DNA of 62,976 nt, the filler included, from Lenisia limosa (Eukaryota; Protista; Breviatea): the NCBI GenBank assembly GCA_001655205.1. It is 13 parts of 13 records of this genome, joined end to end, with 100 filler letters (N's around TTAATTAATTAA, not from the genome) between each part and the next. Parts side by side here need not be neighbours in the genome. Positions count along the whole stretch, not along the records: positions 10,158 to 29,089 come from LPNZ01009740.1; 12 more parts are not named here. One strand, given 5' to 3'. Of this stretch, positions 10,158 through 29,771 are shown one piece after another; the stretch's first letter is position 1, and each line of letters starts with the position of its first letter. The position numbers and the translations under genes were made by a program. The notes under the pieces are model-generated. The model was not told where the DNA came from, ran no database searches, and saw only the letters and a program-made list of their open reading frames with translations.

Positions 10158-10159
10158 TC

Positions 10160-13100
10160 ACCAACACCAAGAAGGACGTCGCGACCGTTCTGACCTTTGC
10201 CGTCAACGAGGACCATGGTGCCATCCACCTCGCCGCCGACCTTGAAGTGCCCTTCCCTTGTACCGGCAACCATAAGGAAGCCTTCGGCAAGATCGACCTC
10301 TCAGCCGACCTCCCGAAGCACGACAAGCCCATGCACTTCACTGGAGACTTGGACTACCACTGTCTGCTCACTGACGACACTGCGCTTGTTGCCCATCTCT
10401 CTGCTGAGGACTTCAAGCTTGCCGGTCTCGACATCCACTCCATCACTGCCACAGCTGACGTGTCGCGCAAATGGCTCGAAGGACCCGCGCCGGCCAGTGA
10501 CAGCAACCGCCTCACCGGCAACTCCAACGCCAACGGTACCAAGCACGAGGCCTTTGTCTGGGACCTCGACGTTGCGGCCGAGGCTGTCGTTGACGCCGCT
10601 CATGTTGACGTTGATCTTAAGATCCACTCCGAGCCCGATATGCCTGCCACCTTCAAGGCCATGATCCACGCCGCCGGCTCCTGGAAGTGGGGCCCTGTCA
10701 CGCTCGACGCTGACGTGACGTTCCCCTGGCCTTGCGAGGATGGAGACGAGCAGCAGGTTGACGGAAGACTGACCCTTGTTCTGCCGTCGGATCACACCGC
10801 GACGGCCGATGCCAAGGCTACGCACACGTGCGGCGCCCACTCGAAATGGCGCGTCCAAGCCGTGTTCAACACCAACATCGTCATCCACAAGAGCATCCCG
10901 AACGTGGAGAAGGTCACCGTTGACATGGTCGGAAACATGCAGGACGACGGAACCATCATTTGGACCGGTAGCCTTGCTGGCAAGACCTACTGGCCCCTTG
11001 TCGGTCTCACCGTTACCGTGACGCAGGAGTTCCGCTGGACTGCTGCCACTGGCTACACCACCGTTGCCACCTTCGTTGACGGTGACGAGGCTGGACACTG
11101 GAGCGTTGCCGGACTCGACATCGGGCTGGACGGCCACTTCCACACCTCCATCCCTTGCACCGACAACGTCGACGTCAGCGCCAAGTTCAGCGCCACCCAC
11201 AAGGACTCCCTTGACGTTCACGGTGACGTCACGGCCCACCACCCCTGCATGGTCAGTCCCGCCAAGCCTCTGACCTGGATGATTGACGCCGACCTTGCAG
11301 CCAAGTTCCACATTGGCCCCATCAACATTGACTTGAAGGACCTCAGCATTCACGCCGAGGGCATCAAGGACTTCGCCGCCGTCGACCCCGACACGCATGT
11401 TGACGACGTGCCGCTTGTCTGGAACGGCAACGCCCACGTCCAGGAGCAATGGAGCTTTGTTGCTGGCGAGATTGACGCCTCTGTTGACCTCTCTTTCACT
11501 ACCAACACCTCTGCTGCCCACCCCGTGTCAGCAATGGTCCACCTCCACGACCATCTCAGCCTCAAGCCCATCGAGCTTGATGCTTCTCTTGACCTCTATC
11601 TGCCCTGCGAAGGCGACTCCAGCATCCAGCACGGCTCTCTGGACTTCACCCTGGTCCCGCCCGCCCACGCCGCGTCCCCTCTCGAAATCGACTGTGACGG
11701 TGAGTACCATTGCCTCGACAGCGACGCTAAGGAATGGCTCGCTACTGGCAAGCTTGCCCAGCCCTGGATTGTGCACAAGCTCAAGCTCAACGAGGTTGAG
11801 TTCCACGCCACCAAATGGCGCGTACCAGACCATTGGGACGGAGACGTCCGTGCCAAGGCCAACCTCTTCGGCATCACTCTTGACGCCACTATTTCATGGG
11901 ACACCGTCAATGCCGAGTCTGACACCGAGTGGCAGATCATCCTCGACGAGCATTCCCACAACGTATGGAAGGACGTCACTCTTGACACTGCTCTGCATTT
12001 CGCCTGGCCCTGCAAGTACGGCTGGAACCAGGCCGGTTCTGCTGATCTCTTCCTTCACGTCACCACCGCCACTCACACCGACTTCCACGCCTCCAGCACT
12101 GTGGAGCACTACTGCCAGGCCAAGGCTGGCGATGCCGCGTGGCGCGTCAACGCCACTCTTGCCGAGTTCAAGCCCGTCCCGATGCTCGATGCCTTCTCCG
12201 TAGACCTCTCCATGATCGGCAAGGCTGACGACCCCGAAGCCTCCATCTCGGATAACGCCCTGCACTGGTCCGGCACCATGGTCGGGAAGGCTTGGTGGAA
12301 CGCCGTCGGCCTTGAGGCCATTGTGACCTACTCCTTCGTTGTTCCCGACGGTCCGTCGTCCACTCACGCCGCCGTAGAGCTCCACAAGGAGTTTGGCAAC
12401 CCCGCCGCCACCGCTCTTCTTGTCGACTTCCATGCCGACACCGATCTGCCATGCAAGGACCACGTCAACTTCCGCGGCCATGTCGAGGTTGAGGTCCACA
12501 ACTCGGCCCGCATTGAGCTTGAAGCCGACGGCTGGTTCAACTGCAAGGCCCATGTTGGCGATACCAAGCTCATTTCAAGCACCAAGGTCGCCGACTCGCA
12601 ACAGGTCTGGAAGATTGACGGCCACTACGCCAACACCTGGAAGTACAAGGGCCTGGCCATCAACGACCGCGTCGACATCAAGGCCAATGGCTGGAGAGAC
12701 CTTCATGCTGCAGACCACCTTGTCTGGGACGGTGTCCTCGAGGGCCACGTCAACCTTGGCGGTGAATTCGGCGTCGTCACGGCCCGGGTTCCCTTCGACA
12801 CTCGTCCCAACGCCGTTGTTCCCCCCCTCATGATCGAGTGGGATCTCAGCTACAACTGGACCATTGGTCACGCCTGGGCCCAGGTCATCTTCGAGTACCC
12901 CTGCAAGGACCGCATGACCGGTAAGGGTGGCGTCGACATTGTCCTCGACCACACTGAGCTTGCCTTCGAAGCCTCCGTCGTGGACAGTTGCGACACCACC
13001 ACTAAGTACAGCGTTCAGTTCGGCGGCAAGCTCGTCAAGCCCGCCAAGATCTACGGCGTAACCATCACGGACGCACACGCCTCGCTGCTCAAGTTCAGAG

Positions 13101-16100
13101 ACCAGGACAAGTGGTCTGGTACCGTCGGCGGCGCCGTGAAGGTTTGCTAAGATCTGCATTATGCGTTTACTGTATTATTTTAATATGCAATGTAGGATAC
13201 ATATCATATAATACTACACCATCATCATGGCATTCTCCGGCCTGGGCTATGTTTTGTTATCAATCCTCAGCCAACNNNNNNNNNNNNNNNNNNNNNNNNN
13301 NNNNNNNNNNNNNNNNNNNNNNNNNNNNNNNNNNNNNNNNNNNNNNNNNNNNNNNNNNNNNNNTTGTGACCGCATTAGGTTGGCCACATTGCTTGTAGTG
13401 GAGAGGTCAGCTTCGACGCCGACCACATCACCCAGTTCATCATCGCCTTCGCCATCAAGAGCAAGCATCTCGACATGGACGTAAGCCTTCCCTAAACCTT
13501 GCTTCCTCCAGCCTGTCTACACTTAACTAAACACTTCAGGTCCGCTTCGAGCGCAACCCCAACCAGCCTGGCCGCAACAACAAGGGCACTGCTGACGTTG
13601 AGGTCCGCAAGCTCGGTCCCATTACCGACTTCAAGGGCCACTTTGAGTTCGAGACCAACGACGTGGGGGGGGGGTATGCTGTATTAAATACAGTTTAGGG
13701 TATTGGTTGGGTATGATATTTCGGGGATATGAAAATACTATTTATAAGCGGAAGGGGTGAACCGTTTGATACCGTATCGCAATCATAAAGCCTCCTTTTA
13801 ACGTTCTTAGAAAATGGACGATTGGATTGCTCGTGCTGAGATCCAGGACCTCCGCATTGGCCTTGGCAGACACTCACTCATCAAGCTCTCAAAATCATCG
13901 GTTTGCGCCCCCCCCCCCCCNNNNNNNNNNNNNNNNNNNNNNNNNNNNNNNNNNNNNNNNNNNNNNNNNNNNNNNNNNNNNNNNNNNNNNNNNNNNNNNN
14001 NNNNNNNNNNNNNNNNNNNNNNNNNNNNNNNNNNNNNNNNNNNNNNNNNNNNNTTGAGGATTTATCGAGAAATTCGGGGGGTTTTTTGAACCAAAGTAAA
14101 GCCATAATTATCACCAAAGATGATACATTCTTCGTTTCCTTTTCATTGTCAAGGTGACCATTGAGCATCACCCTGACGGCGTGGCCCTCATCACCATTGT
14201 CGATATGGTTGCTCCCCGTCTCCCCCTCACCTTCAAAATCCTCGTCATCGACCACGGCTTCCGTGACCTCTCCATCACCCTTGAGTACCAGGGTACTAGC
14301 CTCATGGACTGTCTCGACGGCATTGCCTCGGCCGCCACGCCCGGTGCCGGATCCAAGTCCCTCGACAAGCTTCCCGGCCTTCACTCGGCCATGACCAATA
14401 GCGTCAAGAAGATCGAGCTTGAGGACATGGGTATCATCATCGACATCGGCTACGACAACAGTGAAGATGCTGAGAAGCACGACATCAACAGCCTGCACCC
14501 GACTGTTGAGGCCTATATTGACGTCAAGGTGAGAACCTGCTCCCATTGATTGCTCATGCCTTTTGCTCTTATGTTTTCCATCCTTTTACGATGATCATTC
14601 ATTTTTGCTTTTGTTGATTGATTACCATGCTTGTGCTTTCTACCCCCTGGTGATTACGTTTTCTGACGTTCAGGTCTTCGGAATGGAAGCTTCTCTCGCT
14701 CTTAAGATCGCCAAGGTGAGGGGCTGCTTTGCTTGAAATGTCACCCTGTGTTTTGCAACAAATGCTGCCTTTTATTTTCACGAAATCTTTCCAAATATCT
14801 CAAACAAAACGAAATCCCACCCCCTCCCCAGGCTGGCGGCAGCACCACAGACTGGACTCTTGCCATTGCCTTCCGTCTCCATGGAGACATCAAAAACTCG
14901 TGGGTGTGGTCTGCTCTTTATGCCATGCGCTATTAACTTGATTCAAAGTTAAGACACTCAAGCAACTCTATTGACGTACCAGGTCTCACGGCGTGATGAA
15001 GATCTTCAGCAAGGTCGGTAACAGTCTTGACTTCTACGTCGCCTTTGCCACTGAGGACACGTACCTCCACATCGGCGGGCGCGACATCGAGGTTACCCAG
15101 GTATGCACGCAATGCCTTGAAAATCGGAAATTTCAGGCTACAGAAACTGGGGTACTATGTATTCGCTTCTTTTGGGCCTGTTGTGTTTTAAGCAGCAGTA
15201 TTTGGCGAATTGCGTTTCACCGTCCAGGGCTTCACGCTTGCCGCCTCCCTGACCAAGGACAACCACAACGTTGCCGACGGCTCCGACAGATTAACTGGCA
15301 ACGGCGGTGCTGACACCAACTCAATGAAGGGTATGATTGCTGGTCGCTAAGGACTAGATTATTACTTCCTTTTTTATGCCCTTTTTATGCCCTTTTTTCT
15401 ACTGCTTGGATGGAGGTCTCACACCCACAGTCAACTTGGACCACACCAACGAGCAGACCGGCCTTATGGCGGTCGTCAACATCGCCAGCCACACCGAGCT
15501 CAACATCTACTGCGAGCTCATCATGAAGGCCACGGACGCCAAGCACCCCGGCCTCAAGTTCATGTCAATGAGGTTCCTCCTCAACATCCACGAGACTTCC
15601 GTCGGAATTGGTAGGCTCGGTTTCTGTATCATAATTCCATTTGTCGAGGACTGATTTCGGACCAAATTGCAATACTTGTCACACATTTGCGTCTGTTGCC
15701 CTCACACCCCAGGACTTGCTACCGACATGATGGCGACCTTCAAGGGCGGCCCACAAGGCATCCAGTCCTTCAAGCTCATCATGGCTGTCATGTTTGACCT
15801 CTCTCCCCGCGGCATCATCTTGGACATGGGTGCTGAGCTCACCAAACTCCGTACGCTGCAGTGATTGAAATCTCCATTGCCTCTTCACATCTGTCATTAT
15901 GAGTCCGAAATCTTGATTTTCTCGGCATTTTCTTACTCCGCAGCTGGAGGATCAGAGTTCCTTGAGAACCCCCTTGGAATCTCCAAGCACATTGCCCTTC
16001 GCGTTCCTCTCCTCTTCGAGATCGGCCTGAACCTCGCTGGTATGTTTTGACCCTCATCATTTTCACTTAGGATGACTTTTTCTTCCTTCTTCCACCCAAT

Positions 16101-19100
16101 GGTAAAACAAACAGATTTTTTTTTAGCTCCTTATCCAGCATTTCTTCTCTGACCTTTCAGCTGAGGGATTCCCGGTCCGGTTCGGCTTCATTGCCGACTT
16201 TGTCATCTATGATGGTCACAGCGAAGACCTTCCCCTACCCACTGGTGAGCTTCAGGCCGGCTATGTTGTTCGCTGCGCACTGTATATAATATGCCGCTGG
16301 CTGACTCTCTTTGCCCTTTATTGCGTATCCATTTTGACCACAACCCTCTAACCCCCAGGCCCCCACACGCCCACCCTGGACGACATGGTTGATGGAACAA
16401 TGGAGGCCGGCGCGGCCGTATTTGCCGACTTCATCGATGACGTGTACGCTCTCGAGGCCTGGGTCCTCAAGTTCAACCTCAACGGTCTCATGCAGGCCTT
16501 CGGCTTCGACAAGTACTTCGGCAAGCTCGGCAAGGTCCTCTTCGACTGCAAACTTGACCTGCTCCACATCCGCATCAATCTTAGCACCACCACCGTCCGC
16601 ATCCGCAACCTTGACAACAGCGGAATTGCCCACGAGATCGCCCCCGGTCTTCTCTTCGACATGCGCGGCCTGGACCTTTGGGAGGTCATTCGCGCCGACC
16701 AGCTGACAATTGAAATGGTTCCCAACAAGGGCGTCACGGGCATTGCTGTCATGTACCCCTTCCACATTGGCAACGTGTTCTCCATCGGAGACTACCGCGG
16801 CGGCAAATGCTCACACGATCACGGCCCGGTCCTTGACATTGCCCTCACCACCAAGAGCCAGCACCTCATTGCCGAGGGCTGCACCAAGTTCCTCGGAGCC
16901 GAGCTTGACGCCTGGCTCCAGGTCGGCGTATCAGGCCTCAAGGCCAACTTCACCCTGGACCTGTGGCACAAGTTCAAGCTCGAGGCCGGTGTCACTATCG
17001 TCACCAAGCCTCCGTCAGCCGAAATCTACGCCGGATTCAAGGGCGACATTGTGCAGATGATCATCGACGCCATCAAGGATGCAATCAAGGCTATGGCCCA
17101 GGTCCTTCATAAGGAGTTCGAGACCCTCAAGGCAGCCGCTGATAAGGCCCGCCGCTTCCTTGCTGAGAAGCAGCATGCCATGGACATGGCTCGCAAGAAG
17201 TTCGACGACGGTGTCGGCAAAGTCATTCGTCGCGTCGAGAGTGCTCGGTCAAAGGTCGATCATTTGTCACACAAGTGTAGCTCTATCCACACTAGCGTAA
17301 GAGGGTTCTGGCTTAGCTATCTCATAAAAGGAGCTATAACGCCGTGTTCAACACACTCTGATATGTACCCACTCCCTGTTATCTGATAATACTAAAATAA
17401 TTTGTTTTCGTTGTATTCTTAAATAAAGTAGTAAAATTGTTTTTGCCATTACTTTTGTTGTTACTATATGTTGTTGGTATTTCTAACGCGGCACAGTGGC
17501 GCCATCCCGGTCGCTACATCAAGAAGGCTGCATGCAAGGTTGCCCTCTTCGCTGCCAAGGTCGCCCTCAAGGCTGTCGAGATTGTCCTCAAGGGTGTCAA
17601 GGGTGCCGGAGATGCTCTCCTGCGCACCGCGTCCGCCGCCCTGGGTGCGGCATCCTCCGCCTTCAAGCTGGCCGGCCAGGTCCTCAACGGCATCGAGAAG
17701 GTTGTCGACGCTCTGCCCGGACTCATTACATCCGTCTTGGAGTTCCTCAAGAACATCATCAGTATCGACGAGTTTTACATCAAGGACAAGCTCTCGGCCA
17801 ACGCCAACAAACTCTCGGCCCACATTGCTGGTAAGCTTTTCGGAAAGCACTTCAGCAAGACCTTCGGCTTCACGCTTGACTTCAAGAACTTCGTCAAGAG
17901 CATTGTCAACTGGGTTGTTGATGAGTTCAAACACATCGCCCACGGCCATCTCCGTCGTGACGATCTCATGATCGGCGACCATCTTGACATTGGAGGCTTC
18001 ATCATCCCCCGTGACGACCTTCCAACCGGTGCCCTCGACACCGAGCTTCTTTGTGATGAGATCTCCCGCTGTGTCTACCCCAAGGCCCAGATCATTGATG
18101 CCGGAAGCAACTTTGACGGCAACGACGTCTCCAACACCCCTGCCAAGCGCCTGGAGGGCCATTTGTGCCCCACTATCTTCACCGTGGCCAACGAGCACTT
18201 CTTCCTCGACAACAACAGCTTCAACGGATCGCTTCCGGTCGAAGTCGGCGAGGGCGCTCTTGGCGACATCATCAAGACGCTACACTTCGGAGGCAACAGC
18301 TTCCAAGGCGACATTCCTGTTGTCTGGGCCAAGAACCTGCCGAACGTTGAGTGGCTTGACATCTCGGGCAATGATATTGACGGCTCCCTCGAGCCCCTCA
18401 AGAACATGACCAACCTTGAGTACCTCAACGTTGCCTTCACCAACCTCAACCACAGTGAGACCATCCATGTTGCTGAGACCCTTGCTGAGCTGACCAAGCT
18501 CCGCGTCCTTGACCTTCGCGGCACGCCCATGCACACCGCCGACAACCTCCTTGTCGACTCACCTGCCGAAACCGCGTCGCTCCAGGCTGGTATCGCCATT
18601 GACCGCCACCTTGAGTTCTTCAGCGGCGCTTGTGACAACAGCGACCGTGTTGAAGGCTTCCTTGGCGCGCCGTGCTCCAACCAGCCTGCTGTTGAGGCCC
18701 TCGAAATGGGCCTCCGAGCCTTCGCCCTCAACTACATTGCCGGTGACATGGACGAGGCCGACAACGTCAACGCCACCGTCTTGCGCATGGCCGGCTACGA
18801 CAATGGAATCACCCTGGTGACAATGCGTGTTGACGCCCCCGCCGCCGCCCGCATCAACTTTGATCATCTTGCCGAAGACGTCCGTGCCATGCCCGGCCTG
18901 GTCGTTGCTAAGGTCCCCGAGTACCACGAAGATGACGATGATGACGAGGCGATTCTCAACCCCCCACTCACTGTTTTCGGCGAAACCACTCTGACCATGC
19001 CGGTGCACGACACCAACGTCCAGACTGCCACAGTGCTGGAGACCCTTAGTATTGTCCGGGCCGAGGCCGTCGGAGTTGTCTCACCCGGCCGCATGGGTGT

Positions 19101-22100
19101 CCGTGGTGAAGTCTTCTGCCCCCACGGATGGAGACGCTACGAGGTATCCGTTCCTCCCGCACACCAGGAGTTCGACTACGATCGCAACTATACCGACGCT
19201 GAGCTTGACGCCTATAACCCCACGGGCTACTCCATCGGGCCTCTTGACGACGCTGCCATGGCCCAGACCGTGCCAATGTGCTACATCTCTGTCGACTGCC
19301 GTGAGGAGTGCTACGATGCTGTCCACGAGGCCTCCACCGTCTGCACTGCCTGGCTCTACGACACCGCGTCCGCCCTGGACTGCGACCTGGCTATCCAGAA
19401 CACTCATGCCATCTGCCCGGCCGCCGGCACCGCCAACTGCACCCTTCCCAGTCTCGAGCCCTTCATGCGTCATCTTGAGAACAGCGTTGCCGCAATCAAG
19501 CCACGCATCAACAGCGGCTCGACTCGCGTCGCCATCGCCCGTGCCGACAACGTTGTGGGTCTCTACGACACTTCGACTGATCTTCATGATCTGTCGTCTC
19601 CCCCCGCCCACGTGACCAGTCGCGAGTGGCTCTGTATGCGCGGCGACGCCGATTGTGGCGCTCTCTTTGAGATCACTGTTNNNNNNNNNNNNNNNNNNNN
19701 NNNNNNNNNNNNNNNNNNNNNNNNNNNNNNNNNNNNNNNNNNGCCAAACACGCCGATAATGGCGTCTACGCCATCACGATGACCACCCATGTCGGCTCGC
19801 GCTCCGCCACCGCCGTCATGAACCTCGAGGTTGTCGGCGACTATGCTGTGGCCCTGGAGTGGACCAACAGAGGCCCGGCCCGTTTTGTCTCCGAGGGCGA
19901 AGGTATCGACCTTTCCGTCGACGGTCCTGCCGCCGTGAAGTGGACCAACCCCTCAGCTTCCGGCTTCAGCTGTGGCAGACTCAACCTTGACAGCGCCGAC
20001 GTCACGTCCACGTTCACCCTGGGCAGCGACCTCCTCCAGCTCTCCGTCCGGCCCGCCGCCCTCAAGCCGGGATGCTCCTACGTCTTCCGCGCCACTGCGC
20101 TTGACGCCCGTGGACTGGCCACCGCTCGCTTTGTCGAGACCGAAATCACGGTTGTTTCCAAGCCCATTGTCGGCACCGTCAAGGCCGACCCCGTCCGCAG
20201 CCCGGCCCGGCTTGGCGTCGCCGTGTCCGTACGTCTCACAGCTGAGGACTGGACCTGCACTGAGGCCGCACAGTGGACCGTCGGCTCGCCTCTGATGTAC
20301 AAGTTCGCTGTCCGCCATCCCGACGGCTCCGTGACGGCCATTTCCGCCGCCACCGCCCACAATGAGCTTGTCGTGGCCCTCCCCGCCACTCGTGTTGCCA
20401 CCACTTTCGTTGTCTCCGCAATCGACCGGGCCGGAAATGAGGTATCCAAGACCTTCACCCTCCGCCACCCTCTTGCCACTGCCGCCGCCGGCTCCTCAAA
20501 CCCTGCCGACTTCATTGCCTCGGCCATCAGCAACAACCGCGTCCTGACCTCTCCACGTGACTGGGAGCTTCCTGCCGCGCTTAGCGACGCTGCTATGGCC
20601 GTTGCCCTTCTGCAGAAGGAAGATTTCGTCAACTGCAACGCCATGATTGACTCCATTAATACCCTTGTTGAACGCACTATCACCCTCACCGGCCGCCTCC
20701 ACTCCCGCACCGCACCCCACGCCGGGTCTGCCATCGCCTCTATCGTTCAACGTGCTGCCCTCTGCTCGGAAGCCCCGCAGAGCCTCAGCGCCCTAGTCTA
20801 CGCTGCTGGGGCGGACAACTCCTACTCTCCATCCACGCTCAGCCACGCTGCTCAACTTGGCGCTGACGTGCTTGCGATGGCGGACGCTGTGGCCAACCTT
20901 GACACCACTCACGACGCGCGCGTAGCCCTTCCCACTGTTCTGCGCACGGTTGCAACACGCCATCTTGCCGCCACTGCCGCTGAGTCGCCTCTCAACCAGC
21001 TCAAGTCCTCCGTGACTGCCAGCAACGGTCAGGCATCGTACCAGGTTGCGCGTGGCTCCAAGGCCGCCTTCACCGATAAGTTTGAGGGGCTTGCGTTGAT
21101 AGCGTTGTAATCCTTTGTGAACATGATGGGGATGGCTTCGACCTTTGTTTTATTTTCTATCTTTGTCTTGGCTCTTTAATCTTTGTTCCCTAACCCCCCA
21201 GCACCGTGATCACCCTGGCCACCCACCCCGCCCTGTCCTCCTCCGAATGCATCNNNNNNNNNNNNNNNNNNNNNNNNNNNNNNNNNNNNNNNNNNNNNNN
21301 NNNNNNNNNNNNNNNNNNNNNNNNNNNNNNNNNNNNNNNNNNNNNNNNNNNNNNNNNNNNNNNNNNNNNNNNNNNACTCACAGCAACGTGACGTCGAAGT
21401 TCGTTACTGCACACGACACCTTCTGCCTCGGAGCGGTCAACTCCGAGCCCATCAAGGTGGAGACTGTCGATGACATCGTGGTCGCTGAAGTGACTTTTGC
21501 CGACGCGGACGACTGCATGTTCTGGGATATTGATATTGGTCACTGGAGCAGTGAAGGCCTCGTGTCAGCCGACGCTACTGAGAACAACGGCGTGACCTGC
21601 AGGTGGAGCCATTTGACNNNNNNNNNNNNNNNNNNNNNNNNNNNNNNNNNNNNNNNNNNNNNNNNNNNNNNNNNNNNNNNNNNNNNNNNNNNNNNNNNNN
21701 NNNNNNNNNNNNNNNNNNNNNNNNNNNNNNAAGCCATAATAAAGCTCTTTAATAACCCTTTGGCATAAAAAGGAGTAATGGCGGAAACTGTACTTTTTGT
21801 TGATATTCTTTTCTCCATTTCTAGACCGATCATTGCTGACCATCCTCAGAGCCCCCGCACTAACACATCATCGCTGTGGAGCATCATTGCCCTTGTTGCC
21901 GCCACCCTTCTCGGACTTGGCGTTGTTGGTGCCTCCGTGTTCTTCGCATTCAGAGTATGCCCGATCAAAGATCATTCTTTTGTAGTCTCTGAACATATTA
22001 GTTCTTTATCCAAGATTAGACTTTTACTTCTTGAACTTGAGCCGTGATTGTTTTCCCTCGTTACTGACCGTCTAGTTCAAGGGACCGGTTGCGTCGGAAG

Positions 22101-22230
22101 CTGATTCCCGTCAGGCTTACACCGAAATCACCGACGAAGTAAGCTTTGGACCTTTTCGTTGTGCCACGTTCTTGTCAGTTCACCTCTCACCCGACAGTCG
22201 CCCACCATGAGCCTTAACCAAGACTACTAA
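10160..22230 (+). CDS. Giant single-pass surface protein: tandem beta-rich repeats, helical hairpin, LRR, REJ, GAIN/GPS, one TM, short tail (5' truncated)
   Basis: About 21 visible exons (roughly 9.5 kb coding, >3,100 aa) with uniform C-ending codon bias; most junctions join in phase by GT-AG introns and a few fall in N gaps. The frame is open from the contig edge. LRRs at ~18190-18535 (LHFGGNSFQGDIP; WLDISGNDIDGSL). REJ-like region ~19490-20470 (REWLC...C; LSVRPAALKPGCSYVFRAT; LTAEDW...PLMYKF). GPS at 21514-21617 (CMFWD...WSSEGL...TCRWSHLT). TM LWSIIALVAATLLGLGVVGASVFFAF. Tail RFKGPVASEADSRQAYTEITDESPTMSLNQDY*. Confidence 0.85.
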
Positions 22231-22516
22231 TTGGACCGCCTTGGAGGTTGTTCCTTAATATATAGTATTTGCACAATGTATATCTCTCACTATTAGAACC
22301 AAATTAGAACAAGTTTTGTGACATGTGCGCAATATTATTATATACGATATGAGGAAAACTGGTCAGTGGTTTTTGAACTGAAAAAAAACAAAATAAATTC
22401 GTCTGGTGCCCCATACTCAGGTTTTGTGAAGAATGTATTTTTTGGTGGCGCAGGAGGATCAGGATTGAAGAGAAATATATTATATTTATTTATTTATTAA
22501 AAAAGAAGAGAGTAAT

Positions 22517-24617
22517 ATGGCACAGAACAGTGAAGCAAAGCGGCCAAGTTCCTCAGAAATCGCTCCTGGCAAGCGAACCAAGACCGTTGACCCAAGTTTA
22601 ATCGTTAAAAAGAAGGGTGCTAAGAAGAATGACCCTGTTCCTGTTCTGAAAACCGTGGTTCAGGAAGAAAAGCCGGAGGAGGAAGACTTCGAAATTGAGG
22701 TAGGCTCTGTACTAACCCCTCCCCCTTGACTTTCAATAGAATGATGTTGTCCCTGTTGATTTCCGTGTTCGGGATCTGGCAGAAGGAGATTACCATGTGA
22801 TCAAGAACCTTGTCATCAACCTTGCTGACGGCATTGAGTTTGACTCTGCCGAGCTTACTTCAAAGGTGTGTGGTTCGTAGATTATAAGAACTGTAATAAT
22901 TGGTGGTTTTTGACTTTTTCGGACAAAGGAAATCGCTCCAATAAGTATGGATAATTGACCGATTTGCTCAATGATTTCCCAAGGAAAATCGGTCAAGACT
23001 TATCCCGGTCAGTTTATATATATATCAACTACCACATGCTTTTGGGCTAATTTAATGTTATATATTGGTTTTAAATTGACACGGACAGGTTGTGGAACAA
23101 ATTGATGTTGGTGCGGCTCTGTCCGTTGGCGGGGACAATAGTGTGGAGGGAGAAGACACCTTCGGCTTCATCTCGGTTATGAGTCTCAAGGAGCACAAGG
23201 ATCTCGCGTCGATCCAGTTTTTGGTCCGCCATATCGCCGCGCGTACCAAACATTGCCCAAAGTTCTCCAAAGCCCTTCACAATGCTCTCCAAAAGGACAC
23301 TGGTGAGCGTGAAAAAGCAACAGTAGTGATTACAATAAAGCAGGCTCTCAAATACGAGGAAAATTTTCATAAATTGAACATGAAACACCATACTTTGTTC
23401 ACCCAAAATAGGTTTCCTTAAAAAAAAAAAACCTCACTTCATAGGTCTAGTTTTGAATGAGCGTGCTGTGAACACCCCATATCAAGTAAGCTGCATGGGC
23501 TAATTGAACACCCCATATCAAGTAAGCTGCATGGGCTAATTGCTCCCCAAATCCTTTAATTAACATGTTTAGGTTTCTTTGGTTTGTTGTTTTTCTGTTT
23601 CTTATGCACCCCTTTCTAATGTTGCTTATTTAAATTTATCACACAATAAATAGTTTTGTGATCTGTGTAGGTTGGTGCCATGCTTCAAGTTGCTCTGAGA
23701 GATGATATAAAGTGGATGCATGATAACGAGGTTTGCAAGAAGTGTGATATGTTGTCAGTATAGTATACATCTCCTCACATCTTAGCCCAATGACCCATGG
23801 CACTTCACCCACTACCTCGTGATTTCCAAGGGATTCACTGTGTCGGTATGTGGATTGTCTCCTCCTCCATCAAAATATAACCATTTAAAGAAGACTTCCG
23901 TTGATACTTTACATTCATCCCCACCCTGGTGCATATTGTGCAACACTTTGTTACCAGAGAGAGTATTTCAATATCATCTTATTATATTAGTGTACTCCCC
24001 CCTCCCCTTAACAGCAATATTCTTCATCGAACTTTCCTTGGTTTTNNNNNNNNNNNNNNNNNNNNNNNNNNNNNNNNNNNNNNNNNNNNNNNNNNNNNNN
24101 NNNNNNNNNNNNNNNNNNNNNNNNNNNNNCTTGGAAGTTTCGAGTTTTACAAGGGTGAAGACAAGGCTCTTTTAAGTGTACGCTGAAAATTACCCATGTC
24201 TTTATCACCCGTCTCTATCTCTTTATCACCCACCTTTATCACGTCTTGGTTCTCATGTTTGAAGGCGGCGTCAGCTTGGACCACTTACCCCGTTCCCAAT
24301 TCGGCACACTCTGTCCTTGTTGAGCCCGAAAATGGGGTAGGAAGAGAGGCTTGTCGAATTCTGAGGATGTCAATATACTATATAAATACTAGTGAACAGA
24401 AGCATGAAAAAGTTATTTTGTTTTATTTATTCAAATCCAAGAGAACAACAAGCTGTATCAAGTTCTTTGAGAGCTGACCTCCTAGGAGAAGCCTTCAAAA
24501 GACTCAAAAGACAATGAGGTGATTGTCTCCGAACACCGAATTGTTGCGTTGGTGAGTGCCAAGGCCTGGACTGACTCCCTGAAACAAATTTCTGAGGAGT
24601 GTCAATATGGTATTTAA
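22517..24617 (+). CDS. BCP1: BCP1/BCCIP family protein (multi-exon)
   Basis: Spliced exons give VPVDFRVRDLAEGDYHVIKNL...FDSAELTSKVVEQIDVGA, EDTFGFISVMSL, GLVLNERAVNTPYQVGAML, FYKGEDKALL and HRIVALVSAKAWTDSLKQI; these are the conserved blocks of BCCIP/Bcp1, in the expected order. Confidence 0.88.
23469..23540 (+). repeat. Exact 36-bp tandem duplication spanning an exon/intron junction of BCP1
   Basis: tgaacaccccatatcaagtaagctgcatgggctaat occurs twice (23469-23504, 23505-23540); each copy contains CAA|gtaagc. Confidence 0.95.
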
Positions 24618-24771
24618 TGTTTATTTTGTTATTATTTTTCTAATGGATTGATCCCCCCCCCCCCTCATTTTTTGATCACATTTCTTCGGAGAAAACATCT
24701 TGAAATGGACTATATCAGAAAACAAACGAATTAACATGCTAAAACCTAGACAAAAAGAACAAAATTGATAT

Positions 24772-27190
24772 CTAGCCCTCCTCCTCATCGTCTAAAACAT
24801 GCCGTCGGAGTGAGCGGTCGAAAGACGATGAATCCAACGCAACACTCTGCTCAATTACACCACTTAGGTTCAAAAGATCAAAAACAACCAGTTGTCTTCA
24901 GGTGTCCAATGACATAAAACAGTTCACCCCCCTCCCGAAATAAGACCTAATAAAGCAAACCGGGAAGGTAGGCGAGAGGTATGATGATGACGATGATTGA
25001 TGTAGTCGATTTTCTGGCAGGACTGCAGTTTCAACTACATTGTGTGAGTTTAGTTAGTGCTTATCATACGAATTTCAACAAAGTGGGCAACACTTTGCTG
25101 ACAAAAAGAGAACAGAAACAATCTAGGCTCCCAACGGCATCAGAGGCCTGTACAACTGTCTATTGGTCAATTCAACTCACTTGAGGTCATGCCAGCAAGA
25201 GGAAAGCGGGTAAGCGGGTCAGGGTCCTCCAAGCCAGATTCCGACATAGCTTCTGACATCGAGTCAACGGAATTGGCCACCACAGACTCGATGGTCAAGA
25301 CTTCAGCCTGAGAAAACGACGCGGGGTGGCGATCTTTTGGGAACCGACGGTGCTCGGAAGAGTCTGACGTCATGGACATTCGGCTATGTGTAGAGTGAGG
25401 GGAGTAGAGCGGGTGGCCATCGGTGATGTCAACAGGGGGGTTAGTGGAGGACGGTGAGAGTGGCGGAGACGGCGATGGTGGGGTAAACGTTTGAATCTCT
25501 AAACTCGAAATCATCTGAAACATAAGAGAAGTGCTGAAGATAACCAAGACACGAGCCGGGCTACCCTCATACATCAACAGGATCGAGCTCCTCCTGCTGG
25601 CTGGCTTCGGGGTTGCGAAGACAAGGCTTGAGGCCGCTGGCAGCGCTGTCTAGGCTGGAATGGCTCCATGCTCGTGCCACAGACCTGACGGGATCTTCCT
25701 CGCCACTACTGAAGTGAGCTGACTGCGTTCAAAGGCAGCGTGTGTGTGGGGGAGGGGGGGGATACGTTAACTGATTAAAAAGTTGTAACACGCCAAAATG
25801 TCATTTAAAAAATAAATTCACCCAATTTTTGCCTTATAGTATGGACACTCAAAAAGGAAATTCAATTTGAAACAATTGACCCAAAAGAGCCCAAAGTATT
25901 TAAAGGGATTCCCTTCGCACCAAAAGATTAAATTCCCCTATATTATTTTTTACTCATTATGACACGAGGGAAGCCCAACCAAACGCCGTACCTGCTTGCA
26001 GCGCTCAATGCCCCTGAGGACCGGCGAGGACGGGGAGAGGACAGGCCGCTGTATAATGATGCTGTTTCAGACATCGGCTCATCTTCAGAGATTGGGGAAC
26101 TCGTGTTTTCAGGCTATAAGGGTTAGAACACAAAAGGTCATTATTTCTTACGAAAATTTAAACCCAATTCAATAAGAACAAAGAGAACACATACAGGCAA
26201 TAAAGCAGCCAACCTTTAGAGTGAATGGGTTTGGCTGTTCAGAAGACGCGAAGGAAACGGGAAGTTGGAACTGTAACGGGGGGGTGGCAGTGAACGTGGT
26301 GACATTGGTGGCGAGTGACGGTTGAGGCATGGCTTCTTGCTGGGGTTGGAATGAAACGCTGGCCTCGCCTGAGTTGTGAGCAGGGAATCCCTTAAAAACT
26401 CCTTGTTTTGCAATGATGTGTGTGATACATTAACTCGTGTTCCGACAAAATAAACTGTCAAACCATGAGTAAGTTTGGGTGAAACACCAATCCAGAAGAA
26501 AAATAAATCAGAGATCTTAAGTAAATTCACAACACTCACCAAAAGATGGGAAGGAAGACGCAGAAACAGAATGTTGAGGAACATGTGTGGTCCAGGAATC
26601 AACGATTTCTTTTCTGTCATTTTGGACTGGTCCGGGCTCGAACATGAAATTCACATTACTTCGCTCATCAGACTGAATAGTAAGAAAAGTTACCAAAATT
26701 CCAAAAAAAAACAATCATAATGCCTTATTTATTTAAACTCATTGAAACCTCCATCTAGGCATACAGCTGGTAGAACAAATCGGGTTCTTGTGACGGACAC
26801 TCTTCTCCTAGTTCGCCTTGAATTTTCTGAAAGTATCAATTTGGCACTTGAAGAAGCAACCATTTGAAAACACTGGTTTTATTGATAACATTTACCCACA
26901 CCACCCCTTAATATGCACAAATATTCAGAAACCCACCAGGTAGGTGTTCGGAAGCTTGCTGTGCTCTTGTTTGGGCTGATGTTCGAGTAGCATTGAGCAC
27001 TGTGTTGATCTTCGTTTGTGCATCAATGAAATGATCTAAGATTCAATTAAAATACCCCTTAATGTGTGGGTAAAAATTAAAGGGAGGATCAACACAAGAT
27101 TCCAAGTAAAAACAGAAGAGAAACCCCTCCTTCACCTGCAGGTGAATCATCCTCAAAGCGCAGTCGCTTTTTGTTATTTCGCTGTGACAT
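24772..27190 (-). CDS. Hypothetical Ser/Pro-rich, probably disordered protein (multi-exon)
   Basis: ATG at 27190 (MSQRNNKKRLRFEDDSPA). Further AG/GT-bounded exons include DHFIDAQTKINTVLNATR, KIQGELGEECPSQEPDLFYQL, SPISEDEPMSETASLYSGLSSPR and TFTPPSPSPPLSPSS; possible last exon SFDRSLRRHVLDDEEEG*. No domain recognised and the 3' exons are uncertain. Confidence 0.5.
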
Positions 27191-27559
27191 TCGCGTTGTC
27201 AATGTCAATATAACAACTCAATTACATGATAGTTGGTTATGGGGGGCAATCTAGGACTGAGTTAGGTGGCGAACCCGATGAATGTAAGGTATTTTACCGC
27301 TTAAAAATACAATAACTTATAAAGTTCAGTACAATTTGAGATCCAAAGAGGTGTTTTGTCCAAAGTCCAAAAAAAACAAACCATTTCACCGCCGCCGTAC
27401 TTGAATTTGCTAGAACTACAATTTAAAAGAAGGCCTCTTTTGTCACAGATTAAAGGAATTGACTAATTTCTAGCATTATAACGGACTCTTTTCACTAGGT
27501 GGTGTTTGTGCTCCTAGGGATTTGATAATTATTGCGTTTCTAAACTCTCTGTTTCGATC

Positions 27560-28800
27560 ATGAGTCACCACTACGACGGCATGTACATGGGACAAGGAGG
27601 AAATCATCCAAACCAAGCTGCCCCGCAGTCTCACTCTTTTGCTCAAGGAGGCAATCCCTCATACCCTCACCATCAGCAGCATTCAAATGCTCCTCCCCAA
27701 ATTCATGGTAAGTGTTTTGATAAGATTTCAAGTAAACGTATCCCCAGTTATCTTCTGATGTTATAGGTAACTATCCTGGCCTACAGCCAGAACACATTTT
27801 TATCAAACCAAGAAGAAAGAATCTCACACAGGTAAGGGGAGAGATATTGCATCTTAATAGCGATTTCACCCTATTTGCACTCCACGAATATCTGAAGAAT
27901 GCTGACAATCAAGGGTCTCAATGTCGGAATGATCCGTGCCGACTCCCCCCCTCTTGAGGTTTGTCCACAGTAAACAATACTATCTGTTTCCTCTGAGAAC
28001 CGCATGAGTAAGAAATCCAATGATGTTTTCCTCTCGCACTCTTTATAAAATTCCTCTGAAATGGTTTAATTTTATTATGATAATTCTTTACTGCGCTTTC
28101 TGCACGTAAAAATGCCCAATGTTGGTATTCTTGTAAAGAATTAGAATCACTCACGAATAAGTACAAACAAGTTACACCCTAGGATATGTATACCCGCTTC
28201 CCGACCCCTGAGAGGCGCCTGGCACCAAGACAGTACTTTGATGAAGAGGCTGACGCAAGGCTTTATTCCCCTCCTCCCCCATCCCCACCGTCTCCTCCCG
28301 CTTCCCCTAAGAACTATCAGTACACTCCAAATGTGAGAGGGCGAAAGTAATACCCATCCACCGTGAACATTCTTTTTGTGTGGGGTTTTCATGCAAAACC
28401 AGTCAATTCATAATGTAAGGAAAGAGGAGGGAGAAACTGTTTTGTTTTTGTTTTTTTTGGTGGGGGTTTTAGTTTACATTTTTATCACTCTTTTCATTTT
28501 CAGACAATAATTAGAAACTTTTCAAATCCAAGATAAGCTTCTCCCCTAAATAAATTTAATTGAATAGCCCCAGCGTGCGAGCATGGAAAGTGAAAGGACA
28601 AGACCGCTCATGGCCTACGATTTCCTCAAGATGAACCCCTCAATGATGTCGTCGCTAGTGTCTCAAATGATGACCGGCCTCGGATTGGCAACCCAGCCGA
28701 ACGCCGTTTTTGGCATGCGTCTCATCGTCCAGCCAAATGGCAACGAGAAACTCTGTTTCGGAACTGGAATTAATGGTGAGGAGGTTTTATGTTCAACAAA
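27560..28800 (+). CDS. Hypothetical protein with Q/H/P-rich N-terminus (multi-exon)
   Basis: MSHHYDGMYMGQGGNHPNQAAPQSH...PPQIH|GNYPGLQPEHIFIKPRRKNLTQ joined by a canonical intron; later exons are plausible but their frames are ambiguous. Confidence 0.45.
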
Positions 28801-29771
28801 ATAGACTTGGTATATTACACCATGGGGTCTGGAGGGAAGGTATATGATATATAATTATTAAAAAAAATCTGTATTTTATTAAAATGGGGGTGATTTCAGA
28901 GAGGAAAAAATCCAAACAAAAAGCCTGTCATTTGCTGAAAATAGTAAAGTCTGAGCTATATCCGTGTTGTTCTTGAGAGGAACTTAGAGGCAAAGGATTA
29001 ACTGTTTTTTTTTGAGAAAAAACAATTGAAATATTATAAACTTAATGGGAAATGTTGATGTTGTGTTTTTCAAAAGTAGTATTTATTATNNNNNNNNNNN
29101 NNNNNNNNNNNNNNNNNNNNNNNNNNNNNNNNNTTAATTAATTAANNNNNNNNNNNNNNNNNNNNNNNNNNNNNNNNNNNNNNNNNNNNGCTGAGCGACG
29201 ACGAGCAGCGCGTCAAGAGCAAAACCATCCAAAAACCCGGGCCAGGCGAGGCCTGTTAGTGTGTTGTTTCCGTCATTTGTCTTATCATGTAATCCTCTGT
29301 ATCTGCCTTTCTGTCTTCATGTCATGGGTTTCTTGAAAAGGGTTAACATGATTTCTTTCCTAGTCCAAAAAAACAAAAACCCAAATGTACTTAAGATGAA
29401 GTGTTGAACATATTGGGAGTGCCCCCTCCTTGGCGTGATCAGAAGATGGGGACAACGTGACAACTGGTAAACAACTGGAGGCTGAAGCCTCTGGCTGATG
29501 TAATAACTGAATAACTAAATCATGCATTTCAGCTCTAGTTGAGGGAAGAGGTACCCCCAGGTATCAGCAATTATATATGAATTTCCCTCTCCCAGAGCAG
29601 TTGCCATTCATTGACAACAGACAACACGAGACAAAAGGTGCTTTTGCACAGATCAGACAACTATTTCAAATCCGAAGTAAAGCTGACAAAACTAAGAGAC
29701 GAAAGGCGACATTGCTGGCTACCAAGACACGTCTAGACTTCTTTACTGGTTCTACCGCGAGATAAGACACG

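Follow-up and report, generated by a model that had tools for sequence, protein, structure and literature searches.

The window analyzed here is a stretch of 62,976 nucleotides, filler included, from the breviate Lenisia limosa (NCBI GenBank assembly GCA_001655205.1); it consists of 13 parts joined end to end, and positions below count along the whole of it. Positions 10158 to 29089 come from record LPNZ01009740.1 (contig C9740), which belongs to a 49-Mb assembly of 11,727 contigs and is eukaryotic in composition, with blocks of ~60% GC alternating with N-runs and stretches of 37 to 41% GC. The contig opens within what appears to be a multi-exon gene, whose first visible exon encodes tandem copies of an undescribed beta repeat. 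On the plus strand, a frame of 996 residues (10160 to 13147) is already open where the piece begins, at the contig edge; the single long exon within it (10160 to 13141), truncated by that edge, carries seven tandem units of 135 to 158 amino acids. They are listed below with their cysteine pairs (residue numbers of the frame) and with E values from a profile built only from the units of a paralogous gene, which is described further down.

10160 to 10213, plus strand: what looks like the C terminus of another unit, cut off by the contig edge, to which the frame stays open
10214 to 10687, plus strand: repeat unit 1, 158 amino acids, Cys 34/68 (E = 8e-7)
10688 to 11110, plus strand: repeat unit 2, 141 amino acids, Cys 192/224 (E = 2e-16); the unit modeled with AlphaFold2
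11111 to 11560, plus strand: repeat unit 3, 150 amino acids, Cys 333/363 (E = 2e-12); the second half of the two-unit model
11561 to 11965, plus strand: repeat unit 4, 135 amino acids, Cys 483/518, with an extra Cys at 512 (E = 7e-10)
11966 to 12406, plus strand: repeat unit 5, 147 amino acids, Cys 618/652 (E = 2e-8)
12407 to 12856, plus strand: repeat unit 6, 150 amino acids, Cys 765/795 (E = 3e-5)
12857 to 13141, plus strand: first two thirds of repeat unit 7, Cys 915/944; the exon ends after AAG 13141, with a GT donor at 13142

Every unit bears a Pro-Cys motif, and these motifs begin at exactly the seven positions given in an earlier, sequence-only reading of the window (10256, 10730, 11153, 11603, 12008, 12449, and 12899); PC occurs an eighth time at 11243, where its Cys is the second one of unit 3. 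In seven of seven units the second Cys follows 29 to 35 residues after the first, in line with the ~30 residues noted in that reading, and the W-x-hydrophobic and W-x-G strands that it described are present in the window units. Its remark on a high His content holds for the window copy, where His makes up 5.9% of the frame and 8, not 7, of residues 1 to 100, but not for the family: the value is 2.7% in the paralog and 0.1% in the relative P0004 (see below), and His-richness is peculiar to the window copy. The 18 residues preceding unit 1 look like the end of another unit, and the window holds at least eight units when this cut one is counted. Extra, weaker units are also found in the upstream exons of the paralog, and both observations fit the expectation that the array continues beyond the contig edge.

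Tandem Repeats Finder detected nothing relevant at the DNA level in the window, and BLASTP of the 996-residue protein against itself gave no internal matches, which indicates that the units are old and diverged. Since the BLASTP self-comparison was blank, significance was taken from shuffled Smith-Waterman comparisons and from profiles. With 100 shuffles per pair, unit-versus-unit z-scores were 20.7 for units 2 and 5, 12.4 for units 4 and 6, 12.3 for units 3 and 5, and 7.6 for units 2 and 7. An independent test was provided by the one paralog in the genome, located on contig C1690, which has the same seven units in the same order and is 33% (genome search) or 30% (BLASTP) identical to the window copy. 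A profile made from the paralog's seven units alone and scored on the window frame recovered all seven window units at the expected borders (per-unit E from 2e-16 to 3e-5), with a total of 175 bits compared with 5 bits for the best of 200 shuffled copies. The seven units are true tandem copies of one repeat, and the proposed periodicity lies far beyond chance. The closest paralog match of window unit n is paralog unit n, and the seven-unit array is therefore older than the gene duplication. The two copies differ in base composition, with a coding GC content of ~60% in the window (10158 to 21157) and ~40% in the paralog (L004/L005, G000:C1690), while the introns and flanks of the window copy have 37 to 41% GC; this points either to strong heterogeneity within the genome or to a 49-Mb assembly bin in which two related organisms are mixed.

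The sequence-only reading had called the repeat unrecognized, and the library searches agree. Pfam, searched with the window protein at E values up to 10, returned a single nonsignificant match, DUF6299 (E = 0.14); NCBIfam and a PDB profile search with the repeat gave nothing, a word-index protein search with the 996-residue frame found no match, and a feature search of the ESM Atlas reached a best score of 0.89, below the lead threshold, with bacterial clusters. The repeat is a family absent from the Pfam, NCBIfam, and PDB sequence libraries searched, and we regard it as new.

Relatives were nevertheless found when a profile of 14 units (the seven of the window and the seven of the paralog; alignment A1) was compared with 1.84 billion representative proteins: 49 proteins matched at E ≤ 1e-3 and 18 at E ≤ 1e-10. 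The top match, P0001, is the paralog itself from an ENA assembly, and the best non-self matches have E values of 2.5e-33 (P0002, 5385 amino acids) and 1e-23 (Clastostelium). The named relatives are transcripts of the protosteloid amoeba Clastostelium recurvatum, an amoebozoan (EP01113_P044984 and P011120), and KAK3278693.1, annotated as a “hypothetical protein,” from the green alga Cymbomonas tetramitiformis. These few are eukaryotic and annotated as hypothetical; the remainder are ENA and JGI proteins. The Clastostelium and Cymbomonas proteins and the group P0004 to P0019 have the same repeat with its Cys pair and W-x-G strand, and the hallmark throughout the relatives is Cys pairs ~30 residues apart recurring with a period of 125 to 150 amino acids, together with W-x-G strands. 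P0004, for instance, has a period of 125 amino acids and Cys pairs at 200/230, 336/366, 590/618, 717/748, and 842/871, while P0033 and P0021 contain about ten pairs each. Identity to the relatives is low, and BLASTP matches of the window repeat exon were limited to P0001, P0040, P0023, and P0037. The bacterial proteins P0016 and P0045 were rejected as family members, as only partial stretches of them matched many times and their Pfam matches were odd.

Signal peptides were found in P0004 to P0008 and one C-terminal transmembrane helix in P0003 and P0021. The secreted proteins of ~1700 amino acids, P0004 to P0019, start with signal peptides and stop exactly at the end of a conserved helical region that follows the repeats (region X, described below), whereas the Clastostelium proteins run on through region X and leucine-rich repeats to a single C-terminal transmembrane helix. 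Pfam scans of the relatives revealed neither REJ nor GPS, and the GPS motif pattern was absent from the ten relatives checked. Two units, paralog unit 5 (L004 6849 to 7331) and one unit of P0004 (residues 463 to 587), have lost both cysteines in arrays that are otherwise regular; such occasional units suggest that the predicted disulfide is helpful but not indispensable. The proteins P0004 to P0019 (P0004 at L006 6001 to 11118) are extremely acidic and Ser/Thr-rich, almost without basic residues (in P0004, K 1.2%, R 0.2%, H 0.1%, and S 18.5%), a composition that recalls matrix or mineral-associated proteins.

Structures were predicted with AlphaFold2 for unit 2, using the 14-unit alignment, and for units 2 and 3 together, using a 12-row alignment (A2). 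Both models are confident. The model of unit 2, with a predicted local distance difference test score (pLDDT) of 86.9 and a predicted template-modeling score (pTM) of 0.78, contains eight strands of 6 to 13 residues in sequence order, as assigned by DSSP. The two-unit model (pLDDT, 84.0; pTM, 0.66) contains sixteen strands and no linker; strand 8 (122 to 140, 19 residues) continues directly into strand 1 of the following unit (143 to 155), the two forming a hairpin. In the unit 2 model, the hairpin of strands 2 and 3 has both cysteines at one end, a placement compatible with a disulfide. In each of the eight strands, the alignment of 14 units shows fully nonpolar positions (0% polar) alternating with polar ones, and neither a helix nor a second layer is predicted to lie over the nonpolar face. 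The prediction agrees with the sequence-only proposal of an all-beta unit with one conserved Cys pair. As for its suggestion of a continuous beta-groove or beta-solenoid rod, the continuity is supported by the linker-free two-unit model, while the predicted antiparallel hairpins argue against a solenoid. Taken together, strand assignment, pTM, and fold matches allow the array to be read as a curved, continuous antiparallel meander.

Comparisons with known folds gave generic matches only. For one unit, Foldseek returned nothing below an E value of 0.1, with LptC (E = 0.11) and avidins first, and VIA-align gave Z scores of 7 to 9 to outer-membrane barrels, avidins, DUF3224, and the TamB taco. 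For two units, VIA-align superposed KdgM with a root mean square deviation (rmsd) of 2.5 Å over 101 residues and NalP with 4.2 Å over 156 residues; a single unit of that model overlies two thirds of a 12-stranded barrel. Matches at Z 7 to 9 are generic in this setting; models that lack a clear match usually reach a background of Z 7 to 8. The two-unit Foldseek search also listed TamA and outer-membrane barrels at nominally significant E values; neither a barrel nor a kinship was read from this, since with TM-scores of 0.22 to 0.27 and an rmsd of ~19 Å only the meander topology is shared, and the overall shape differs.

The protein continues past the apparent stop codon at 13148: the exon closes after AAG 13141 and is followed by GTTTGC, so that the in-frame Val-Cys-stop at 13142 to 13150 is intron sequence; the paralog has an intron at the same place and in the same phase (L004 8054/8055), with the donor GTATGT. 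Exons were analyzed individually. Downstream of the repeat exon, the following features were found.

13379 to 13480, plus strand: next exon, 34 codons, probably completing unit 7; AG acceptor at 13377 to 13378, GTAAGC donor after 13480, colinear with a 34-codon exon of the paralog
13540 to 16246, plus strand: about ten small exons of the same gene with no match to the repeat profile; colinear with the paralog (fragment BLASTP against L010 8753 to 10787, E down to 8e-16)
16385 to 17990, plus strand: conserved region X, homologous to the last ~430 amino acids of P0004 to P0019 and to the Clastostelium proteins
18280 to 18541, plus strand: leucine-rich repeats (Pfam LRR_4, E = 8.9e-8, 32.6 bits, cutoff 27)
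19935 to 20568, plus strand: REJ-like region (Pfam REJ, PF02010, E = 7.9e-5, 21.9 bits, below the cutoff of 25)
21514 to 21615, plus strand: GPS motif ending in ...TCRWSHL/T (Pfam GPS, PF01825, 26.1 bits, cutoff 22.5; 30.2 bits in the paralog)
about 21874 to 21951, plus strand: single predicted transmembrane helix LWSIIALVAATLLGLGVVGASVFFAF, then R, read from the frame 21769 to 22044

Region X has a beta-rich start with the motif NLDNSG[IV]AH…LW, followed by long amphipathic or coiled-coil helices, with ~250 residues rich in Ala, Lys, and Gly; in the relatives it also carries a C-x6-C-x6/7-C-x5-C cluster. Copies lie at 16385 to 17990 in the window, at L005 408 to 1700, and at L006 9838 to 11115. 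The region had no Pfam match, and a PDB profile search returned generic coiled-coil matches only. In the paralog, region X, the leucine-rich repeats, and the REJ-like part lie within one uninterrupted frame of 1493 codons. A protein search with the leucine-rich and REJ part of the paralog returned generic leucine-rich-repeat proteins only. That the repeat exon and the downstream exons belong to one gene is indicated by the colinearity of the small exons and the intron position after unit 7 shared with the paralog, and also by the order of repeats, region X, and leucine-rich repeats, which is common to Clastostelium. “Repeats plus X” is a conserved secreted module, which in some lineages is fused to a membrane anchor and here also to REJ and GPS.

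Six N-runs of 62 to 133 bases interrupt the contig (13276 to 13363, 13921 to 14053, 19681 to 19742, 21254 to 21375, 21618 to 21730, and 24046 to 24129). The first lies in the intron between 13141 and 13379, several are inside or beside exons of this gene, and one lies just past the GPS cleavage motif, so that parts of the protein are unseen, including anything between the GPS motif and the transmembrane helix. PLAT had no match anywhere in the genome, although the same search was blank in control genomes too, and matches to PKD_channel fell on contigs other than those of the window gene and its paralog. Elsewhere, the genome has clear REJ domains at a dozen or more loci (E down to 1e-30) and PKD_channel matches at several, on contigs that include C3687, C10849, C8721, C5267, C9984, and C2290, which together represent an expanded polycystin/REJ repertoire.

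Several lines of evidence place the repeat outside the cell: the GPS motif and single transmembrane helix downstream, the signal peptides and type I topology of relatives, the conserved Cys pairs, the acidic isoelectric point of the repeat region (5.0 in the window and 4.5 in the paralog), and the 19 N-glycosylation sequons in the repeat region of the paralog. Our favored explanation, to which we assign a probability of roughly 60%, is that the tandem extracellular beta repeat, with units of ~125 to 160 residues, forms the distal ectodomain of a single-pass receptor-like protein and acts there as a stalk or binding rod. Each unit would consist of eight long antiparallel strands in up-and-down order, each strictly amphipathic, with one Cys pair probably stapling the end of strand 3 to the loop that precedes strand 2, and the last strand of a unit would extend to form a hairpin with the first strand of the unit after it. 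With strand 8 continuing in this way, the array is predicted to be a continuous curved beta-meander rod rather than a set of beads on flexible linkers. In a single-pass membrane protein encoded by a multi-exon gene, at least eight such units would form the distal ectodomain, and after them would come, in order, the conserved helical region X, leucine-rich repeats, a REJ-like region, a GPS whose HL/T site is intact, and one transmembrane helix.

Polycystin-1, sea-urchin REJ proteins, and adhesion G-protein-coupled receptors carry long beta-repeat arrays distal to a GPS autoproteolysis site. By analogy, the rod may be a long, acidic, disulfide-stapled, stiff stalk or binding surface, which at ~3.5 to 4 nm per unit and eight or more units would span ~30 nm. 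Such a stalk could hold the outer end of the protein tens of nanometers off the membrane and relay ligand binding or a pulling force to the GPS-containing juxtamembrane region. With polycystin-1 and the sea-urchin REJ proteins, the window gene shares a tandem all-beta array N-terminal to leucine-rich repeats, a REJ-like region, and a GPS with HL/T next to the membrane, and the single transmembrane helix is likewise a feature of suREJ1. It differs from them in the extra conserved helical region between the repeats and the leucine-rich repeats, and in the repeat itself, which at ~145 residues, with eight meander strands, a Cys pair, and no Pfam match, is unlike the PKD/Ig repeat of ~85 residues. 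The PLAT and 11-transmembrane region of polycystin-1 were not found in the window gene, in which a single transmembrane helix follows the GPS and N-runs leave gaps. As a whole, the gene resembles single-pass REJ/GPS proteins more than polycystin-1 proper; region X is common to it, P0004 to P0019, and Clastostelium, and the leucine-rich repeats and single C-terminal transmembrane helix are shared with Clastostelium.

Several points weigh against this explanation. The role of stalk or binding rod is drawn purely from analogy, and secreted standalone relatives that lack leucine-rich repeats, REJ, GPS, and a transmembrane helix imply that the role of the repeat need not be linked to a receptor. 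The REJ match in this gene stays under the Pfam cutoff (21.9 versus 25 bits), and the proposed splicing derives from sequence and from comparison with the paralog. The models were built on shallow alignments of 12 to 14 rows, with the continuity of the sheet suggested by strand assignment, pTM, and fold matches alone. In addition, the alignment of ~100 of 120 residues with avidin-type barrels leaves room for separate barrels joined by a long strand.

This last arrangement, in which the units are beads on a string, that is, independent closed eight-stranded barrels of the avidin/calycin type whose apparent continuity is a modeling artifact, and each of which may bind a small ligand, strikes us as rather unlikely. 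The eight-strand up-and-down meander is indeed shared with avidin and streptavidin, a small barrel fits both the strand number and the strict amphipathicity, and the single-unit model aligns with many avidins at Z 7.0 to 7.8 (rmsd, 3.5 to 4.3; 95 to 104 of ~120 residues) and with DUF3224 barrels at Z 7.9 (117 of 134 residues). However, scores of Z 7 to 8 are background here, and ten- and twelve-stranded barrels fit equally well or better (OpcA, Z 9.1; KdgM, rmsd of 2.5 over 101 residues), which suggests an open, less curved sheet. Neither Pfam nor the PDB profile search revealed sequence similarity to avidins or lipocalins, and the window units are in tandem and, in the two-unit model (pTM, 0.66), have no linker and share a strand of 19 residues. 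We would give still less weight, and indeed very little, to the possibility that the repeat belongs to one of the known extracellular repeat families (Ig-like/PKD, cadherin, FN3, Calx-beta, or HYR) and has diverged so far that profiles miss it. Such repeats are usual in the ectodomains of REJ/GPS receptors, and the unit length agrees with theirs within a factor of 1.5, but none was detected in the window protein (Pfam, E up to 10), the paralog, or twelve relatives (E up to 0.1/0.01). These families are recognized by a profile match and by a two-sheet sandwich of short strands, and the window repeat shows neither, with long predicted strands of 10 to 19 residues in meander order; Ig-like chains are absent among the top VIA matches, and antibody and ZP-N chains appear in Foldseek at nonsignificant E values only.

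A different use of the same sheet, as a hydrophobic groove or belt, is improbable in our view, although the nonpolar face on all eight strands across 14 units, with no covering helix or second layer predicted, speaks for it. The amphipathic sheet would then form an open, taco-like channel or lie on a lipid surface, binding or carrying lipids or other hydrophobic material outside the cell as a working analog, not a relative, of the Lpt, TamB, and repeating-beta-groove (RBG) bridges, which it resembles in its long series of amphipathic antiparallel strands, uninterrupted by other domains. LptC was the top Foldseek match for one unit, the TamB taco fragment 5vtg aligned over 115 of its 131 residues at Z 7.7, and long amphipathic helices come after the repeats. 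Yet alternating polarity is equally expected of the core of any barrel or sandwich, and the LptC match (E = 0.11) and those to 5vtg (Z 6.6 to 7.7) are within background, LptC being absent from the best 50 rows after realignment. Nor did Pfam give a match to AsmA, TamB/DUF490, LptC, or OstA, or to Chorein_N, VPS13, ATG2, or related profiles, even at an E value of 10. An RBG unit, as in VPS13, ATG2, Hobbit, Tweek, and SHIP164, has five meander strands and then a loop that crosses back over the groove, whereas the window repeat has eight strands per unit and no predicted crossover element; RBG proteins bridge organelle membranes in the cytosol and the TamB, AsmA, and Lpt proteins are periplasmic, whereas the window repeat is Cys-paired and, by the evidence above, extracellular. 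The likeness to repeating-beta-groove and AsmA/TamB folds that the sequence-only reading had floated is therefore not upheld. A variant that we hold to be just as improbable is that a secreted, disulfide-stapled amphipathic sheet with an exposed nonpolar face works with the helices to move or bind lipids or other hydrophobic material at the cell surface, having arisen independently of known lipid-transfer folds; such a sheet might resemble the amphipathic beta belt of apolipoprotein B.

Returning to the receptor-like protein with a distal rod, we file the repeat as a new family within a known kind, the tandem beta repeats of receptor ectodomains, with a small chance of something more unusual. 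As a rule, large polycystin/REJ/GPS-type receptors are assembled from a few well-known extracellular modules, whereas here the largest part of the ectodomain is an unrecognized repeat. It occurs in only about fifty of 1.8 billion representative proteins and yet these include proteins of eukaryotes as distant as an amoebozoan and a green alga. A new Pfam family might be built on it, and its predicted long, uninterrupted antiparallel meander might define a new structural class of cell-surface rod; should the nonpolar face prove open, bridge-like lipid carriers would have their first extracellular counterpart in eukaryotes. For annotation, the pattern C-x~30-C ... W ... W-x-G with a period of 125 to 160, together with the profile, provides a hallmark for giant “hypothetical” proteins.

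Two minor observations concern the assembly. Ten G at 13665 to 13674, which follow the exon sequence around 13660, and 13 C at 13908 to 13920, which abut the N-run starting at 13921, bracket ~230 bases, and another C-run is present at 24653 to 24664; these homopolymers look like assembly or sequencing artifacts or an inserted element. On a different contig (G000:C8340:9810-11840), a 684-codon open frame has matches to HSP70, yet the matched stretches contain in-frame TGA, which could be a quirk of frame reading, a contig with another genetic code, or a contaminant.

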